Source of the DNA: Hemiscyllium ocellatum
Lineage: Eukaryota
Assembly: GCF_020745735.1 (NCBI RefSeq)
Contig: NW_026867509.1
Location: forward strand, 496,001-560,000
Length of the DNA stretch: 64,000 nt
Direction of reading: 5' to 3'
The notes beneath the pieces were generated by a model, which saw only the letters and a program-made list of their open reading frames with translations, ran no database searches and had not been told where the DNA came from. This document shows, piece by piece, positions 8,250 through 58,612 of the stretch (its first letter is position 1; each line of letters opens with the position of its first letter). The translations under genes were made by a program, and so were the position numbers.

Positions 8250-9568
8250 GTTGAAAATGTGTTGCTGGTTAAAGCACAGCAGGTTAGGCAGCATCCAACG
8301 AATAGGAAATTCGACTTTTCGGGCATAAGCCCTTCATCAGGAATGAGGAGAGTGTGCCAAGCAGGCTAAGATAAAAGGCAGGGAGGAGGGACTTGGGGGA
8401 GGGGCGATGGAGATGTGATAGGTGGAAGGAGGTCAAGGTGAGGGTGATAGGCCGGAGTGGGGTGGGGGCGGAGAGGTCTGGAAGAAGATTGCAGGTTAGG
8501 AGGGCGGTGCTGAGTTGAGGGAACCGACTGAGACAAGGTGGGGGGAGGGGAAATGAGGAAACTGGAGAAATCTGAGTTCATCCCTTGTGGTTGGAGGATT
8601 CCCAGGCGGAAGATGAGGCGCTCCTCCTCCAGCCGTCGTGTTGTTATGTTCTGCCGATGGAGGAGTCCAAGGACCTGCATGTCCTCGGTGGAGTGGGAGG
8701 GAGAGTTAAAGTGTTGAGCCACGGGGTGGTTGGGTTGGTTGGTCCGGGCGTCCCTGAGGTGTTCTCTGAAGTGTTCCGCAAGTAAGCGGCTCGTCTCCCC
8801 AATATAGAGGAGGCCACATCGGGTGCAGCGGATGCAATAGATGATGTGTGTGGAGGTACAGGTGAACTTGTGGTGGATATGGAAGGATCCCTTGGGGCCT
8901 TGGAGGGAAGTGAGGGAGGAGGTGTGGCCGCAAGTTTTACATTTCCTGCAGTTGCAGGGGAAGGTGCCGGAAGTGGAGGTTGGGTTGGTGGGGGGTGTGG
9001 ACCTGACGAGGGAGTCACGAAGGGAGTGGTCTTTGCGGAACGCTGATAGGGGAGGGGAGGGAAATATATCCCTGGTGGTGGGGTCCGTTTGGAGGTGGCG
9101 GAAATGACGGTGGATGATACGTTGTATACGGAGGTTGGTGGGGTGGTTGGTGATAACCAGTGGGGTTCTGTCTTGGTGGCGGTTGGAGGAGCGGGGCTCA
9201 AGTGCGGAGGAGCGGGAAGTGGAGGAGATGCGGTGGAGGGCATCGTCGATCCCGTTTGGGGAGAATCTGCAGTCCTTGAAGAAGGAGGCCATCTGGGCTT
9301 TGCGGTGTTTGACCTGGTCCTCCTGGGAGCAGATGCGGCCGAGACGAAGAAATTGGGAATATGGGATGAAGTTTTTACAGGGGGCAGGGTGGGAGGAGGT
9401 GTACTCCAGATAGCTGTGGGAGTCAGTCGGTTTATAGTAGACGTCTGTGTTGAGTCGGTCACCTGCAATAGAAATGGAAAGGTCGAGGAAGGGGAGGGAG
9501 GAGTCTGAGACAGTCCAGGTGAATTTGAGGTCGGGATGGAAGGTGTTAGTAAAGTTGATGAACTATTC
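8250..9568 (-). mobile_element. Neptune-type PLE, 5'-truncated (RT C-terminus, Cys-rich linker, GIY-YIG)
   Basis: ORF 9292-8366 contains CNCRKCKTC and IIYCIRCTRCGLLYIGET. The in-frame upstream sequence reads FHPDLKFTW...LPFLD. Confidence 0.92.
8310..8343 (-). ncRNA. Minimal hammerhead ribozyme motif (mutated)
   Basis: ttc-CTGATGA-a-gggc-ttat-gccc-GAAA-aGTC-gaa. An A replaces the usual C after GAAA, breaking the ACGT palindrome. Confidence 0.65.
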
Positions 9569-9667: not shown

Positions 9668-9972
9668 TGTGAGATGAGTGCGGATTCAATGCGCAGTTAT
9701 ACGCAGTGGAGTCATTAGGCTGTATTTGCGAGACCAGTAACGAACTGATGTCCGACACAGGATCAATAGAAACAGAAATTCGCCCGCCACTAGCATTTTA
9801 TTTATTGTGCTCTCCGGACGTGTACCTTTGAACTGGATATTTCAGCGCTTGTCATGGGTACTGACAGAACCAGTAAACTATGTCCTGAGGGAGCCCTGAA
9901 TATTCACAGCATAAAGAAATGGTGTCACCTGAGAGTTGTAGGGGTGGATTCTGGACGTCACGTAACTGGAAT
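9668..9972 (-). pseudogene. TCR delta V pseudogene, supporting-V-like family
   Basis: cccacag acceptor; GDTISLCCEYSGLPQDIVYWFCQYP*QALKYPVQRYTSGEHNK*NASGGRISVSIDPVSDISSLLVSQIQPNDSTAYNCALN. Two stops and a 5' frameshift; no leader seen upstream. Confidence 0.85.
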
Positions 9973-29650: not shown

Positions 29651-29958
29651 TTAGATTAGATTACTTACAGTGTGGAAACAGGCCCTTCGGCCCAACAAGT
29701 CCACACCGACCCGCCGAAGCGCAACCCATACCCCTACATTTACCCCTTACTTAACACTACGGGCAATTTAGCATGGCCAATTCACCTGACCCGCACATCT
29801 TTGGACTGTGGGAGGAAACCGGAGCACCCGGAGGAAACCCACGCAGACACGGGGAGAACGTGCAAACTCCACACAGTCAGTCACCTGGGGCGGGAATTGA
29901 ACCCAGGTCCCTGGTGCTGTGAGGCAGCAGTGCTAACCACTGTGCCACCGTGCCGCCC
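29651..29958 (-). mobile_element. HE1-type tRNA-derived SINE, young
   Basis: Head gggcggcacggtggcacagtggttagc...gggttcaattccc (A/B boxes) and TAATC-repeat tail. Confidence 0.93.
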
Positions 29959-33003: not shown

Positions 33004-33265
33004 CAGTTGTACTGTGGAGATACGTAAACGACTGATTATCACTGCAGAGTCAGTATCAGCAGAAATTCTTCCTCTAGCTGTGTTTTCTGTATTCTGCTCT
33101 TCTGAAGTGTATCTTTGAAGCAAGTATTTCAGAGACTGTCCTGGGCGTGATCGTTTCAGTAAACTGTGTACTGACAAAACCCTGAAAATTTATGGCTTAA
33201 TATCACGGTGGCAGCTGCAGCAGAGGTTTGGAAAGTAGGACTCTGGGACAACAGAGACGGAGAAT
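33004..33265 (-). pseudogene. Supporting TCR delta V (NAR-TCR type) pseudogene
   Basis: ttccacag acceptor; DSPSLLSQSPTFQTSAAAATVILSHKFSGFCQYTVY*, frameshift, RSRPGQSLKYLLQRYTSEEQNTENTARGRISADTDSAVIISRLRISTVQL. CDR1 Cys TGT at 33176-33174; no leader seen. Confidence 0.82.
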
Positions 33266-34299
33266 CTGTGGAATTTTTTAAAAATGTTTTTAACGCATTG
33301 ACTGCCTCAGAAACCTAGTAATTGTGAAAATCATTCTGTTAGTAAGACATTTCTCTTAATTTAACGTAGTCGTGAAGTGTCTTTAACATAATTATCAAAT
33401 TAATGTCCATACTTTGCGTTTCCTGTGTTGACACAGTGAATTATTACGATCCAATTCAATCGCTAGAAGAGTTCAAAATCAAGACTAAATTTCAAACTGT
33501 AATTGCAAGTTTTCTACCACAGGGAATTGTCCCAGAAAAGCGAGCGAGTGTTACCGAATGTGAAAAATGGTTGCTTTTTTGAAGCTTCCGCCATTGCAGT
33601 ACAGACAGTTTGATAATTAGCTGTGCTTTCTGCTTCCATCGCCTTTGATAAAATAATCTTCATGTGTATTTCTGGAAAAATGTGCATTTGGGAAATCGTT
33701 TTATTCATTCACTCTCCTCCTTGCTAAGTCGATCGCCTTGCAGAATTGGGTAAAAGAAAACACCCCTGTGTGTGTTGCATCACTGTCTTAGTAAAGTCCA
33801 ATGGAAAGTCATAAATGTCATCAGTAGTGATTCTTCTAGATGCCCGCTGAGGCACAGTATGAGGGAATAGAATCAAAGAAAAGTGAGGGCACAGTGGCAG
33901 TTCATTCGCTCTGGCGTGCACATATTGTCTCTCTGAGAGAGGAATTCAGCTGCTACCATTTCAAACTCTCTACCAAGCAGCCTGGTGCATTCTTCATTCT
34001 TTCATAATTGTGCAATTTGCTTTATAACATCTGAATCAATTTTGTCTGTCCTGCAGTCTCAGGAAATACATGCCAGATCATAACTGTTTATCTTGCTGTT
34101 CCTTTATTTTTGAAGCCGCAAATGCTTCTTTTGTCAATTCACTTAAAGGGTTTATTTTCCATTGCCGAGTTTTCTACCAACGGGATCAGTTTCACTTTAT
34201 CTTATCTATCCAAGCTCTTCATGATTTTGCTTATCTTCACCAAGTAGGAAAAATGTGAATGCGTCGCAGGGACTCAAAATAAAATTTACCAGGATGTCC

Positions 34300-34880
34300 C
34301 CTGCTAAGAAAGATACGGGCGATGAAGGATTGTATAGATCGGGTTTTTTGTCTTTAGAACGCATGAGGTTGAGGGGAGACTGATAGAAGTTTATAAGATT
34401 GTGAATGGCTTGGAGAGAATGGAGACTATTGAGCGTGTTTTCTCCAGGGTGGAGGGTTAAATTACTAGGGACACAGGATCAAGGTGCGAGGGGGGAAGAG
34501 TTCAAAAGCGATATGCGATGCAAATTTTTCACTACAAGGTAGGGGAGTGCCTGGATTGCGTTATCAGCGGATATGATGGGATCACACAAAATATCAGATT
34601 TCAAAACACCTGAAAGAAAACATTAATATGAGTGGAATGAAGGGATACGGATCCTATGTTTGAAGACAGTTTAAGAAAATATGTTCAGCATGTATTAACG
34701 GACGCTTCAACAGCTTAAAACCCTTTTCCTGTGCTGCATTGTTCTTTTTACGGTTCTTCCTTTTCCACAAACTTTTCCTCTTGAAGAAAAAATTAGCCCC
34801 GACTTCTTCAATCCATCTCCTTCTCCGAACTCCCAGAACCGTCAAACAATGCTTGTAAATATCTCTTCATGCTCTATCAT
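34300..34880. mobile_element. CR1 LINE 3' fragments (two pieces, opposite orientation)
   Basis: RT C-terminal/3'UTR-like sequence (aggttgaggggagactgatagaagtttataag...). Confidence 0.55.
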
Positions 34881-35147
34881 GCTTTTCATCCGACCTAAGA
34901 AACATTTCCCAGAACCTGACACAATGTTCTCGTTGTTGTCAAAGCTGGATCCACAAATTTAACGCAATATCTTTGCTTTTGTACTCAATGTCCCCCTCAA
35001 TAATGCTTATGCAAGTTTGATGGCGATGGCCTTTTATGACACTTTCTTTATTTTTTGCTCGGATGTAAATTGTTTCGACATTTCATTACCACATTGTAGC
35101 TACAGTCCACTTTTGCAACTATTTGTCTTTCCATAAATCCAGGAAAC

Positions 35148-35440
35148 AAGGGTGGCATGATGGCTCAATGGTTTGCATTGATGTCTTACAGTACCTTTGA
35201 CTCGAATTCTATTTCAACCTCGGGTGAGCGTCTTTGTGAAGTTTGTACATTCCCTCCATGTCTGCATGGGTTACTTCCCGATGCTCAGGTTTTCTCCCAC
35301 AATCCAAACAAATGTTGTTTAGCTGAATTGGTCATGGAGAATTCTCCATTCTGCTCAGGGATGTGTCAGGGTGGGTTACACTTCGGAGGGTCGGTGTGGT
35401 CTTGTTGGGTCAAAGGGTCGGTTCCTACAGTGTAAGACAT
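35148..35440 (+). mobile_element. Old HE1-type SINE
   Basis: Diverged match to the 29651-29958 SINE. Confidence 0.7.
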
Positions 35441-36489
35441 CTAATTCAATTTCGCTCGGTTTCACTTTTCTAAGAATTACATTAAGCCATTTCATTTCAA
35501 AATCTATATCTCTCACTTTACGGCATTTATTTGCTCATTTCCATCTTGTGAATTGCGACCGAGTCTCCAAATTGGCGTTTGGGTTTTGCCACTGCGATTT
35601 GCACCTTGGTTTTACCATTACTGAGAACGAGGTTCTCGGCATGTCGGACAATTTCAAGTCCCTCAGTCCATTGATGACCTGTTCTCCTTGTTTGTGGCAA
35701 ACTGTTCTCTGAAATTTGCATCAAATGGAATCTTCAGATCAGGACAAGTCCATTCGGGCAATTGCCTGCACCTGTTCTTGTACTCTCCAAATGCCTCTTC
35801 CCTCCTGACTGTGACTAGCATGATTCTTCATTTCTTCTATTTCCTTCCATTTCCCGCTCTCTATTTTGCAACTACGCCATCGTCACAATAAACCATTCAT
35901 TGAAAAAACTCGATATGTCGGCCAGCTTTACATTCTGAACTGAGTTTGTGCAAATGCATTCTTCTGAATATATTCATCTGTTGTTTTGGAGCTTGTTACG
36001 GTTGTACTGAACAGCGTTTTGCTCAGGACAACAAAGAGTTGAACCAATGTATCCACACGCAGCTTATTCAGTATTTAACCACAAGTCAAAGATTCGGATG
36101 GTATCTTTTCATACTCTCTGATTTTCGAGATGAGGACAAGACTGTTCTAACGCTTAAAACTATGCATAGTTGTGCTCCACACTATACTTAGTGGTGTAAA
36201 AAAATGTTGATAATGCAAACTTATATAAGATCTGAACAGAAAAGGTGATTCGTATCTGAGAAGGTCAATAAATTTCAGGATTATCCACGTGACTCGTCTA
36301 TATTCAAATCATGCTCCGCCCTGTTTCCAAATGCATGAACCCCTCTTTGCTTTCAAACATCTAAGAAAGCTGTGATTCCTTATGGCATCCCTTAAGAGAT
36401 AGGTAAGATTTAACTAGGTCAACCTGTGTTTTTACAAGGTATTGTTAATATAATTCAAACCAGTGTAATCCGATAGGTGACTGTGACCC

Positions 36490-37520
36490 TTAGCCGTACA
36501 GTTGAATTTAGCGTCATGGCTCAGAGATGCACAGCTTACCCTTCAGTCTAATGCGTCCATGATAACCAGATATCATAAAATAATCCAGCCCCATTTGCCC
36601 ACCTCTGCACCATATCCCTTTCAACTCTTCCATGTAATTAAGCACTCACATGCATTTACTTGTTGTAACTGCAACACCCTCGACAGCTTCATCTGGATGT
36701 TAATTCCGTAGTTCACCACACTCTACATGAGACAATTGCCCCTGAGATCAGTTTAAAATCTGTCCCCCCACCTTCGTATCTAAAATAAATGCTCTCGGTT
36801 TGGACTTCCTAACTCAGGAACTTCCTAACTCCTAAATCACTCGATCAATGTCTTTCATGATTTTATAAACTTCTGTAAATTAACATCTCAGCCTCTGACT
36901 CTCCAGAGAAAGTAGCCTCAACCTATTTAGCGTCTCCTTACACCCGAAAGGCTCCACGCCTGGCACCATCCTTATAAGTATTATCTGAAACATTTCAAGC
37001 TTCACAACATCTTTCCGATAGCAGGGCGACCAGAATTGAACGTAGTATTCCAAAAGTGACAGAACCTAAGTTCTGTATATCAACAACGCGACCTCCTACC
37101 TCCTATGCTTAATGTACGGACGAAGAAAGGCAAAGGTACCAAACACGTCTTCACGATACTGACTACCTGCGACTTTAATTTCAAAGATTAATAAACTTGT
37201 GCACCATATTGCTTGTCTGGCAAGACTACCCAGTACCTGATCTGTAAGTGTACAACCATGCCCTGATTTTCCCTGTTAAAACGTTGCAGCTCATTATTAT
37301 CTGGCCTGAACTCCATCTGCCATTCCACCATCCATCGACCCATCTGGTCAAGGTCCCATTGTATTCTTTGTTCACTACACCAAAAAATGATATCACCTGC
37401 AATCTTACTATCCACACCTCTTTTATTCACATTCTAATCATATATACATAAGTGACAAAAAACAGCGAGACAAGCAGCGAACCTTGTGGCACATCGATGG
37501 ACACAGTACTTCCATTCGAA
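36490..37520 (-). mobile_element. CR1 LINE RT 3' fragment
   Basis: DLDQMGRWMVEWQMEF-type RT remnant. Confidence 0.7.
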
Positions 37521-37905
37521 AAGCAATCTTCCACCACTACCTTTGGAAGAAACACCGGATCAGATTGCTCTGAAAGGAAGAAGTGAAACTAAACACAAGA
37601 TATCAGATGTGGATGCCATCTGGTATCAGTGACTCTTGAAAGGCATCAGACATTCCAACAGGAATCGACTGACGACTACACCATGAACGACATCACTGAC
37701 AGATGTACTCAGCATTTACAAAACTCAAAATTTTAACAGTGACCAACCAGCATTATTTGAACAACTGCGGTGTTTTCAGTGAGAGGGGGAAATTAGGGTT
37801 ACTCAAGACTCATGGGGTTCGAATTTTCGCTTACTTCTGTCATAATCTGCGGAGAATGTTTTAGAATCATGGCATGCCGAGCCATATCATTTAGCGTTAT
37901 AAGTG

Positions 37906-38335
37906 TACCAAACTTTATAATAATAGGCGGCAGTATCTTTAACATTCACCTTCTGAGCATTCAGCAAAATGTCTTTTCAGCTTTACCCGTCCTCACAACA
38001 AACCGTCCTCCTGATAAGATTCAGTCCCGCTCTGTCCCAGTCCATGCTTGTCTGAAGAAATCTCCCCGCTGCAATGAATATGCAAAGAAATCACCATAGA
38101 AAACACAGTCGATGATGAGAGACTGGCACTTTGCTTTGTTGTCCGCTGGTAGGGTCTGTACCACTGAATGACTGACAGTTATTGGTCTGCACAGTGGAAC
38201 TGAACAAGAAACATCGCCTGTTTTATTTTTTCATGGATTCGGGGAGCTCTGTACTAAATGTGCACAATGTTAGATTTTTGGATCCATAATCCCGGGTAAA
38301 TAGTCACACAGTGTAAGGACAAGAATAAGTCCCAT
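37906..38335 (-). pseudogene. NAR-TCR V pseudogene (putative leader 38335-38293, V exon 38199-37906)
   Basis: VVQTLPADNKAKCQSLIIDCVFYGDFFAYSLQRGDFFRQAWTGTERD*ILSGGRFVVRTGKAEKTF, frameshift, LNAQKVNVKDTAAYYYKV. NAR-type GGRF, short CDR2-less length and an extra FR1 Cys (KCQS). Leader MGLILVLTLCDYLP has a GG instead of GT donor. Confidence 0.82.
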
Positions 38336-49352: not shown

Positions 49353-50184
49353 GGCTTTCTACCTTGTCCGCTGCAGCCCTGCAATAATGTGGGCTCCACA
49401 GCACAGTAATGCACAGCGTTGTCAGAAATTAGAATAGTTAAGTCGGTGATCTTCTCAGCTATTTCAAGCGTAGAATAAAATCCAGCAGTGATGATGTTAT
49501 CCCTGCGCACATCACTCCCAATAAGCCAAAGCATGTGCTGTGGCCGCTGCCCAGGACGTTTACTGTACCAGTTCACAAACATTGGGTGGCATGGTGGCAC
49601 AGTGGTTAGCACTGCTGCCTCACAGCGCCAGGGACCTGGGTTCAATTCATGCCTCAGGCGACTGACTGTGTGGAGTTTGCACGTTCTCCCTGTGTCTGCG
49701 TAGGTTTCCTCCGGGTCTTCCGGTTTCCTCCCACAGACCGAAGATGTGCGGGTCAGGTGAATTGGCCATGCTAAATTGCCCGTAGTATTAGGTAAGAGGG
49801 GTATGGGTGGGTTGCGCTTCGGCGGGTCGGTGTGGACTTGTTGGGCCAAAGGGCCTGTTTCGACACTGTAAGTAATCTAATCTAATCTAAAAAAAAAGTG
49901 AGAGATGCTGGTCTTCACGATGAAGATTAGTTTCGTATTCTTTGCATATTCAAACGTCTTTTCAGCAAAGGGCTGTCCCACTGTATCCTGCTGTCTCTAT
50001 TCTAACATATAAAATGTAATAAATTAAAATTGGTGTGAGCCTGATATTGATCAACATACTCGTCATAACGACATCAACCAACAACTAACATTTATATTGT
50101 AGCCATCATTCCTTTTCTTAGAAGAAAATACGTACTCAGAAAGTTTAAAATGATGAGAAACTGTGTGAGACATTTCTCCAAGAT
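49353..50184 (-). pseudogene. TCR alpha-type V pseudogene split by an HE1 SINE
   Basis: Leader-like (ATC)LEKCLTQFLIILNFL followed by GTACGT (50184-50136); DTVGQPFAEKTFEYAKNTKLIFIVKTSISH, SINE, MFVNWYSKRPGQRPQHML...DNAVHYCAVEP. RSS cacatta-23-tagaaagcc at 49391-49353. Confidence 0.8.
49584..49897 (+). mobile_element. HE1-type SINE, young
   Basis: tRNA-like head, TAATC repeats and A tail. Confidence 0.93.
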
Positions 50185-55875: not shown

Positions 55876-56607
55876 ATGACAATTGCTTTACATTCATTCT
55901 TCACAACTGCAGCTGTCATAACTGGTAGCACATTTCAAGATTTATACACTCTTCCACATTCAGGAATAATTGGAATCTTTTGTCTATTTCTAAAATGTTC
56001 ATTCCTATGTTAGTAGGGACCATAGCATGACGATAACATGTCAGAGTTGTGTATTTCTAAATTTCTTCAGGAGTTGGTGGTGCAGATTCAGTCTTCCAGG
56101 AGCTTGTTACATAGATGAAATTTAAACAAGATAACGTAATCATGGCGTACATTTACTCGACCACTTCTACTGCATATTCCTTACAAAGAAGTCGCCAACA
56201 TTGAGACAACGCTCTGATGTTCTTTATCGACATCAGTAAATTATGGAAATATTCCCACAGTTGAAAGTATGCGTCCTCAATCTTCTGCTAACATTGACTG
56301 TGTGAAAGGTGAGGGAAATTTCACCTCGTAGTGAGGTTCACTATCTCGTTCATTGGTATCCTTTAGGGGACACACAATCATCCTTATCTGCTCTGCTCTG
56401 CATGTGATTCTAGACCCTCAGTAATGTGGATGACATTGAAATGCCCTCCGTGCAATTAGGAGTGAACAATAAATTCTGCCTCTTCAGTCATGCCCTCATC
56501 TCGTGAATGTTGAATTAAAAAAAGCTACAGCACTCTGACAGCGTTGAGTATTACTGCAGACTCAGAGATACAGTGACAGGAACCAGAGGGAGCTTTGTAC
56601 AAAAGAC
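55876..56607 (+). pseudogene. TCR alpha-type V pseudogene with ~200-bp insertion
   Basis: Leader MTIALHSFFTTAAVIT followed by GTAGCA (55876-55924). Exon from 56071: VGGADSVFQE... with stops, ...KGEGNFT, insertion, LQHSDSVEYYCRLRD. RSS tacagtg-23-acaaaagac at 56569-56607. Confidence 0.85.
56326..56523 (+). mobile_element. Shark retroelement 3' tail inserted in V exon
   Basis: Ends in an A run; similar to 44720-44870. Confidence 0.55.
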
Positions 56608-58096: not shown

Positions 58097-58612
58097 ATGG
58101 TAGTATTTTATATTCATTATTTGCAACTGCAGCGCTCATAACTGGTAAAACATCCTAAAGCTACACACTCTTCGCGTACAGACATTACTCACGTCGTTTC
58201 AAATGCACTTTCTCTACGTTTAAAAAGTGTGCAGTCACAGATGGTAACACGTACCATAGCAATGATAACATATTGAAGTCTTATGTTTCTAAATTTCTGC
58301 AGGTGTTGATGGTGCAGACTCAATCTCGCAGGAGGTAGTCTCAGCAATGAAATTTGAAGGCAATGCATTGAATTTTATTTAAGCGTATTTGGCCACTGCA
58401 ACTAATGAGCATTCTTTGGATTTATATCGTCAGGATCGATACAGAGCACTGTCATTCTCGATCCACATCACTACCTATGGCGATGTTATCAAAGCTGAAG
58501 GTGTAGAGCTTCGATTTTTGACTAATATTGACAGTGGGAAAAGTGTGGGACGTTTCACCGTCCGTGATATGCGGTTGTCTGACAGCACAATGCAATACTG
58601 CGCACTGAGAGA
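58097..58612 (+). pseudogene. TCR alpha-type V pseudogene
   Basis: Leader 58097-58144 has a 1-nt deletion, then GTAAAA. Exon 58303-58612: VDGADSISQE...FI*AY...LYRQ...FTVRDMRLSDSTMQYCALRD. RSS is decayed. Same family as 1622-2143 and 55876-56607. Confidence 0.85.

Follow-up and report, generated by a model that had tools for sequence, protein, structure and literature searches.

Evidence for a pseudogenised germline NAR-TCR cassette without D and J segments in Hemiscyllium ocellatum

Two decayed V exons lie in the same orientation on contig NW_026867509.1 of Hemiscyllium ocellatum (RefSeq assembly GCF_020745735.1). The question that they raise is whether they are the halves of one antigen-receptor cassette, and whether the extra cysteines that both still carry say anything about its fate. 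The window analysed here is the whole stretch of 64,000 nucleotides at positions 496,001 to 560,000 of the forward strand of this contig, and window coordinates below count from its first letter. We consider it highly probable that the minus strand from 38335 to 32860 holds a pseudogenised germline NAR-TCR cassette, which makes it a relic within a known, published receptor system and not a working copy.

NAR-TCR (or NAR-TcR) cassettes are doubly rearranging T cell receptor (TCR) delta cassettes of cartilaginous fish, reportedly described by Criscitiello, Saltis and Flajnik in 2006. In a working cassette, RAG would join the NAR-type V to its own D and J, and the resulting VDJ exon would then be spliced, via a phase-1 donor at the end of the J, onto a leaderless supporting V-delta exon, which would itself be rearranged to the D and J of TCR delta. 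The product would be a delta chain whose two V domains are thought to be linked by a disulfide, formed by a cysteine from the a-b loop of the NAR V with one from the first complementarity-determining region (CDR1) of the V-delta. Doubly rearranging NAR-TCR cassettes of cartilaginous fish appear as a cited finding in PMC1845163 and PMC12227049. What survives of this skeleton in the window, in order on the minus strand, is a leader, a NAR-type V, an intron, a supporting V-delta 4.64 kb downstream of the NAR V, and the signal array of the latter (Table 1). This copy could perform none of the steps described above.

Table 1. Features of the cassette and of the interval between its two V exons, in window coordinates
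Feature	Position	Strand	Basis or remark
NAR V leader exon	38335-38291	-	MGLILVLTLCDYLPG; ATG at 38335; homologous to L001 leader
NAR-TCR V exon, pseudogene	about 38176-37906	-	similarity, tree, alignments
Decayed NAR V recombination signal	37894-37860	-	alignments with L001, L002
5'-truncated LINE reverse-transcriptase fragment	about 37590-36500	-	reverse-transcriptase-like translation
SINE-like repeat	35148-35447		clean 300-bp insertion relative to L001, whose blocks abut at 9498/9500
Leaderless supporting V-delta exon, pseudogene	33266-33006	-	acceptor AG at 33268-33267
Decayed tandem recombination-signal units	33005-32860	-	72% identity to L001 11644-11790
L001 and L002, Chiloscyllium punctatum cassettes (see text); LINE and SINE, long and short interspersed nuclear element.

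The upstream exon is, by its similarity to known genes, a NAR-type V. It reads ..KAKCQSLIIDC.., a TGA, ILSGGRFVV..KTF, a frameshift and ..KDTAAYYYK, so that all the NAR-type motifs that a sequence-only reading had placed on the minus strand were found again on rereading. An exhaustive HMMER search with a 59-amino-acid N-terminal piece returned four relatives, P0001 to P0004, at 53–70 bits (E 9e-15 to 2e-9), one from horn shark, two from bamboo shark and one from Mustelus asterias (P0001, XP_067870253.1; P0002, GCC20150.1; P0004, XP_078058183.1). The exon is 61–70% identical to these NAR-TCR V domains, with the highest value for a bamboo-shark gene, versus about 30% to the V of the immunoglobulin (Ig) IgNAR. 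We regard the architecture of the Mustelus protein P0004 as decisive: its leader is followed by a NAR V, a J (..GSGTVVTVTA), a second V domain that begins with DSRSL.. and a constant region, which is the order of a NAR-TCR delta chain. Consistently, a maximum-likelihood tree placed the window V inside the NAR-TCR V clade (99/100), beside the two bamboo-shark genes, with IgNAR V, represented by two rows only, outside this clade and the supporting V-deltas as a far group.

The published marks of a NAR-TCR V are a normal leader, a cysteine in the a-b loop and a missing tryptophan in the WYRK motif (PMC1845163), and all three are present in the window V. The a-b loop cysteine (TGC at 38128-38126) aligns with the cysteine of K(E/K)ECQS in P0001 to P0004 and with a glycine in IgNAR V, while a phenylalanine at 38059-38057, within FFRQ, occupies the position of the WYRK tryptophan, as in the FF[RK]Q of the four relatives. 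Given that the absence of this tryptophan belongs to the marks of the family, we read it as a family trait and not as decay. The leader is the only hydrophobic ATG-led open reading frame (ORF) upstream of the NAR V, and together with its promoter region it shows 83% aligned identity to a bamboo-shark cassette (L001, described below). Structural comparison gave a compatible result, with VNAR domains making up 24 of the 30 best PDB matches found by phmmer (best E 3e-6; X placed at the two breaks in the query). The alignment covers residues 2-86 from end to end and lacks the segment comprising C'-C'' and CDR2, and the matches to conventional VHH domains were weaker and mostly partial. Three word-indexed protein searches, with the NAR piece, the V-delta ORF and an alignment of two dead V-deltas, returned no match, because these copies are too decayed to share exact words with their relatives; Pfam with the window pieces gave nothing useful, and Atlas with the NAR piece gave nothing.

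The downstream exon is a supporting V-delta. Its reading is DSPSLLSQSPTF..SHKFSGFCQYTVY, a TGA, a frameshift and PGQSLKYLLQRYTS..GRISAD, and it shares 61% of its residues with the second V domain in P0004 and 65% with the L001 supporting V-delta, with which it pairs in a tree at 85/91 support; the four other V remnants of the window show 26–34% identity to the supporting V-delta. It thus groups with the supporting V-deltas of NAR-TCR and not with the other remnants, as the sequence-only reading had proposed against a conventional TCR delta V. The CDR1 cysteine, conserved in supporting V-deltas (PMC1845163), is encoded by TGT at 33176-33174 within SGFCQYTVY, a motif that takes the form SG[FL]CQYTV[YH] across the family (SGFCQYTVY in L001, SGLCQYTVH in P0004). 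As had been supposed, there is no leader: within 630 bp upstream of the exon we found no leader-like ORF with a phase-1 donor, even though the same scan picks the NAR V leader at once. Instead, the exon starts in the phase of a J donor (cacag/AT TCT CCG, the slash marking the splice junction), and its first codon needs the last base of a J to give (G)AT, the Asp of DSPSL. The J of a second bamboo-shark cassette (L002) ends GCC G/GTAAGT and would supply this base, as G plus AT encodes the Asp of DS[PR]SL. The start also coincides with the junction VTVTA/DSRSL between J and V-delta in P0004. In PDB searches, both the dead exon (33006-33266) and the intact domain P0004:127-224 matched antibody VH best and not mammalian TCR V, which is a property of this family and no contradiction to the assignment.

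That the two exons form one cassette follows from a comparison with genomic sequence of the bamboo shark Chiloscyllium punctatum, for which we used BEZZ01003649.1 (L001) and BEZZ01119444.1 (L002). L001 holds a NAR V (protein GCC20150.1) and a D between two signals; an assembly gap and a LINE come next, and then a supporting V-delta with two signal units spaced 60 bp apart. Collinearity with L001 (3601-13273) extends over about 8 kb of the window, from 39288 down to 31412; it begins 1 kb upstream of the leader, takes in the intron and continues past the V-delta signal array. The NAR V exon is 84% identical between window and L001, the V-delta exon 78% and the remaining sequence about 70%, and because of this low value outside the exons L001 is probably an old paralogue of the window copy, not its orthologue. 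The proposal that two V exons about 4.6 kb apart on the same strand make up one unit is therefore borne out. L002 carries a D 380 bp and a J 770 bp behind its V, each with good signals. Within its positions 600-1090, both signals that flank the D are 12-spaced and that of the J is 23-spaced, and the V signal has a spacer of 22 nt, so that the layout reads V(23)-(12)D(12)-(23)J.

The locus thus resembles NAR-TCR cassettes in its NAR-type V with split leader, a-b loop cysteine and no WYRK tryptophan, in the leaderless V-delta with CDR1 cysteine that follows 3' on the same strand and starts in the phase of a J donor, and in the tandem signal array behind this V-delta. Unlike a working cassette, the window copy lacks D, J, any usable signal, an intact frame and an intact leader intron. 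L001 shares with it the LINE that lies in the intron separating the V-delta from the NAR V(D)J part, but has both V frames open, a V signal of the form CACAGTG-22-nonamer, a D with two signals and no SINE.

Alignment against L001 and L002 revealed at least ten lesions over the two genes, and both genes are indeed dead, as had been noted before. The split leader of the NAR V persists as a relic only, with both splice sites of the leader intron destroyed: the ancestral donor GT (CACG/GTTAGT in L001) by a 1-nt deletion between 38292 and 38291, and the acceptor, together with the first codons of the V exon, by a 22-nt deletion at 38177/38176. A cryptic leader donor, TGT/GTGACT, was considered and dropped in favour of the ancestral donor position given by the alignment. 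Further downstream, the NAR V exon has a TGA stop at 38023-38021 and a 1-nt deletion at 37966/37965. Its Cys23 is kept (38107-38105), whereas Cys104 has become tyrosine (TAT at 37919-37917; TGT in bamboo shark). The motif DTAAYYYK, which had been listed as a V hallmark, is present, but its third Y is this mutated canonical cysteine. The heptamer position at 37894-37888 reads CTAAATG versus CACAGTG in both bamboo-shark cassettes, the nonamer position TCTAAAACA matches ACAAAAACG at six of nine positions, and a scan for recombination signals returned none at this site.

In the V-delta exon, Cys23 is replaced by histidine (33194-33192), a TGA occupies the position of Trp41 (33158-33156), one nucleotide is deleted at 33146/33145, and a 38-nt deletion at 33006/33005 has removed the end of framework region 3 with Cys104. 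A cysteine in 'HSILC' (about 32990) was examined as a candidate Cys104 and rejected, as it sits in the recombination-signal remnant. The first heptamer position behind the exon is CTCTGTC versus CACTATG in L001. At the position of the TGA, the open supporting V-delta of L001 (11349-11642) has leucine for the canonical Trp41 (YTVYLYRH) and Mustelus has tryptophan. Overall, each V exon is interrupted by a stop and by a frameshift, of the four canonical cysteines three have been lost (Cys104 of the NAR V, Cys23 and Cys104 of the V-delta), and the CAC of the heptamer is gone from both recombination signals, so that neither exon retains the open frame, the two canonical cysteines and the CAC heptamer of a functional V segment. 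Several of these lesions are substitutions or multi-base deletions and therefore not homopolymer sequencing errors.

The most extensive loss concerns the D and J segments, which a NAR-TCR V has 3' of it with their own recombination signals. Homology to L001 and L002 ends at about 37602, and the part of L002 that contains its D and J (551-1147) has no match in the window. Signal and motif scans found no recombination signal and no J motif between 37900 and 33270, in agreement with the earlier failure to see any, although the earlier wording that these segments could not be found is too weak: they are absent and not merely hard to see. Where the D, the D-J spacer and the J would be expected, a LINE starts instead. 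Its translation (VVVEDCFS.., VPQGSLL.., WQMEF.., YVQFWSP) corresponds to the C-terminal half of a reverse transcriptase, and we take it, from its motifs, to be of the CR1/L2-like class; Pfam gave no match for this piece and Atlas a weak retroelement lead only. J- and D-like candidates were followed up and discarded. A possible D remnant at about 37508-37481, based on a weak signal match and a MAFFT alignment to the bamboo-shark D, encodes reverse transcriptase of the LINE (VVVEDCFSNGSTVSIDVPQGS) and can be aligned to the L001 LINE, and the J-like 'YEGGGTDFKL' at 36772 is LINE sequence as well. The J-like 11-mer TCTGGGACAAT at 33536-33526, and a 12-mer at 10740 of L001, were judged to match by chance, as it is the assembly gap of L001 that corresponds to the J part of L002.

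The same LINE is found after the assembly gap in L001. It would have landed first in the J-to-V-delta intron of an ancestral cassette, and a later deletion in the window copy would have taken away D and J together with the 5' end of this element. The SINE-like repeat further along the intron is a later insertion, with clean boundaries against L001. Three SINE-like copies with about 71% mutual identity occur in the window (29655-29958, 35148-35447 and 49584-49881). Even though both kinds of retroelement are present in the gap, as the sequence-only reading had it, they do not fill most of it: repeats account for about a third of the 4.64 kb, and the remaining sequence shows homology to the bamboo-shark cassette's intron.

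How far can the identification as one NAR-TCR cassette be questioned? In sharks, IgNAR clusters are linked with the TCR alpha/delta locus (PMC12227049), which makes it worth testing whether the NAR-type exon is a dead IgNAR V segment that merely lies beside an unrelated V pseudogene. IgNAR V (VNAR) does belong to the same class of short V folds without C'-C'' strands and supplies the best solved-structure matches; indeed, the leading PDB matches are all IgNAR V domains, as no NAR-TCR V has been solved. However, the exon is more than twice as similar to NAR-TCR V as to IgNAR V, the tree sets IgNAR V apart as a separate clade, and the a-b loop cysteine and the missing tryptophan are marks of NAR-TCR, IgNAR V having glycine at the former position and keeping the latter residue. 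IgNAR V segments sit in Ig clusters with constant exons, and none was seen in the window, where no Ig constant-region query was run; instead, a V-delta lies downstream with no D in between, and the 8-kb unit, this V-delta included, is collinear with a bamboo-shark cassette made up of a NAR V and a supporting V-delta. An IgNAR origin of the exon at 37906-38199 is accordingly exceedingly improbable, and the library search and the tree both settle this point in favour of NAR-TCR V, as had been anticipated. A similar doubt concerns the pairing, since no D or J joins the two exons and 4.6 kb with two retroelements separate them, as might be expected of independent neighbouring pseudogenes. Against such independence, the homology to L001 is uninterrupted in its order from 1 kb upstream of the leader to beyond the signal array, the spacing shrinks to about 3.2 kb once about 1.4 kb of retroelements is removed, and the V-delta exon starts in precisely the phase that a NAR J donor requires. 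We therefore regard two unrelated neighbours as very unlikely and retain the reading as halves of one cassette.

Some features of the comparison do weigh against this reading or its details. The only long comparison cassette, L001, is just about 70% identical to the window outside the exons. Its assembly gap sits exactly at its J and the 5' end of its LINE, and the order of events, LINE first and deletion later, is therefore one that we infer. In the V-delta tree the rows are few and fragmentary, the supporting clade itself is without high support, and the contrast set contains no intact conventional shark V-delta.

Both extra cysteine codons, at 38128-38126 and 33176-33174, are kept, exactly as the sequence-only reading had stated, and the emphasis that it placed on them invites the idea that the dead cassette was retained, for instance to donate sequence or as a transcribed decoy, with selection preserving the two inter-domain cysteines. 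It might be argued in favour of this idea that both survived while three of the four canonical cysteines were lost, and that the exons are closer to L001 than their flanks are. Yet among the six relevant cysteine codons three survive, namely Cys23 of the NAR V in addition to the extra pair, and both members of this pair would be among three survivors of six with a chance of 0.2, or one time in five; neutral decay at the observed divergence predicts a per-codon survival of cysteine of about 0.55–0.8. The three codon positions contribute evenly to the differences from L001 in the two exons (13/11/17 and 17/17/22), and the higher identity of the exons is explained by constraint on the intact L001 side alone. 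A paralogous dead V-delta of the supporting type, at 9687-9953 on the minus strand, has lost its CDR1 cysteine. The survival of the two cysteines thus fits chance and nothing points to selection; the weight earlier put on it was an over-reading, as neutral decay often gives the same outcome. Retention as a decoy or donor under selection on the two cysteines strikes us as highly doubtful, and we give as little credence to a variant in which the copy, its inter-domain cysteine codons and its exons are kept because working NAR-TCR cassettes use it to supply sequence or as a transcribed regulator. Rather, this cassette copy appears to be drifting neutrally.

Taken alone, one more pseudogene in the NAR-TCR family is of little importance. 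The dead cassette does show the usual birth-and-death turnover of antigen-receptor gene segments, and that cassettes are duplicated as entire units, including the intron and its retroelement. Cassettes probably tolerate kilobase-sized insertions that separate the supporting V-delta from the NAR V(D)J part, because the bamboo-shark relative with the same LINE in its intron keeps open V frames. Moreover, the marks of the family, i.e. the a-b loop cysteine, the missing tryptophan and the leaderless V-delta with its CDR1 cysteine, remain recognisable despite heavy decay, which aids genome-wide counts.

Public names hide these genes: Mustelus P0004 is called 'T cell receptor alpha chain MC.7.G5-like', and the horn-shark and bamboo-shark models are 'uncharacterized' or 'hypothetical'. 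Public annotation overlooks NAR-TCR genes. Within the window, the second dead V-delta of the supporting type shows 53–59% identity with the supporting V-delta of Mustelus and 40% with the 33-kb copy, and has proline in place of the CDR1 cysteine as well as two in-frame stops. The 23 kb between these two V-deltas contain no NAR V, and the window has only the one described here. Four further decayed V segments belong to other classes (1627-1917 and 49397-49576 on the minus strand, 56339-56566 and 58407-58607 on the plus strand) and show 26–36% identity to the supporting V-delta. Behind the segment that ends at about 56563 (..SDSVEYYCRL) come a signal-like TACAGTG, a spacer of 22 nt and ACAAAAGAC.

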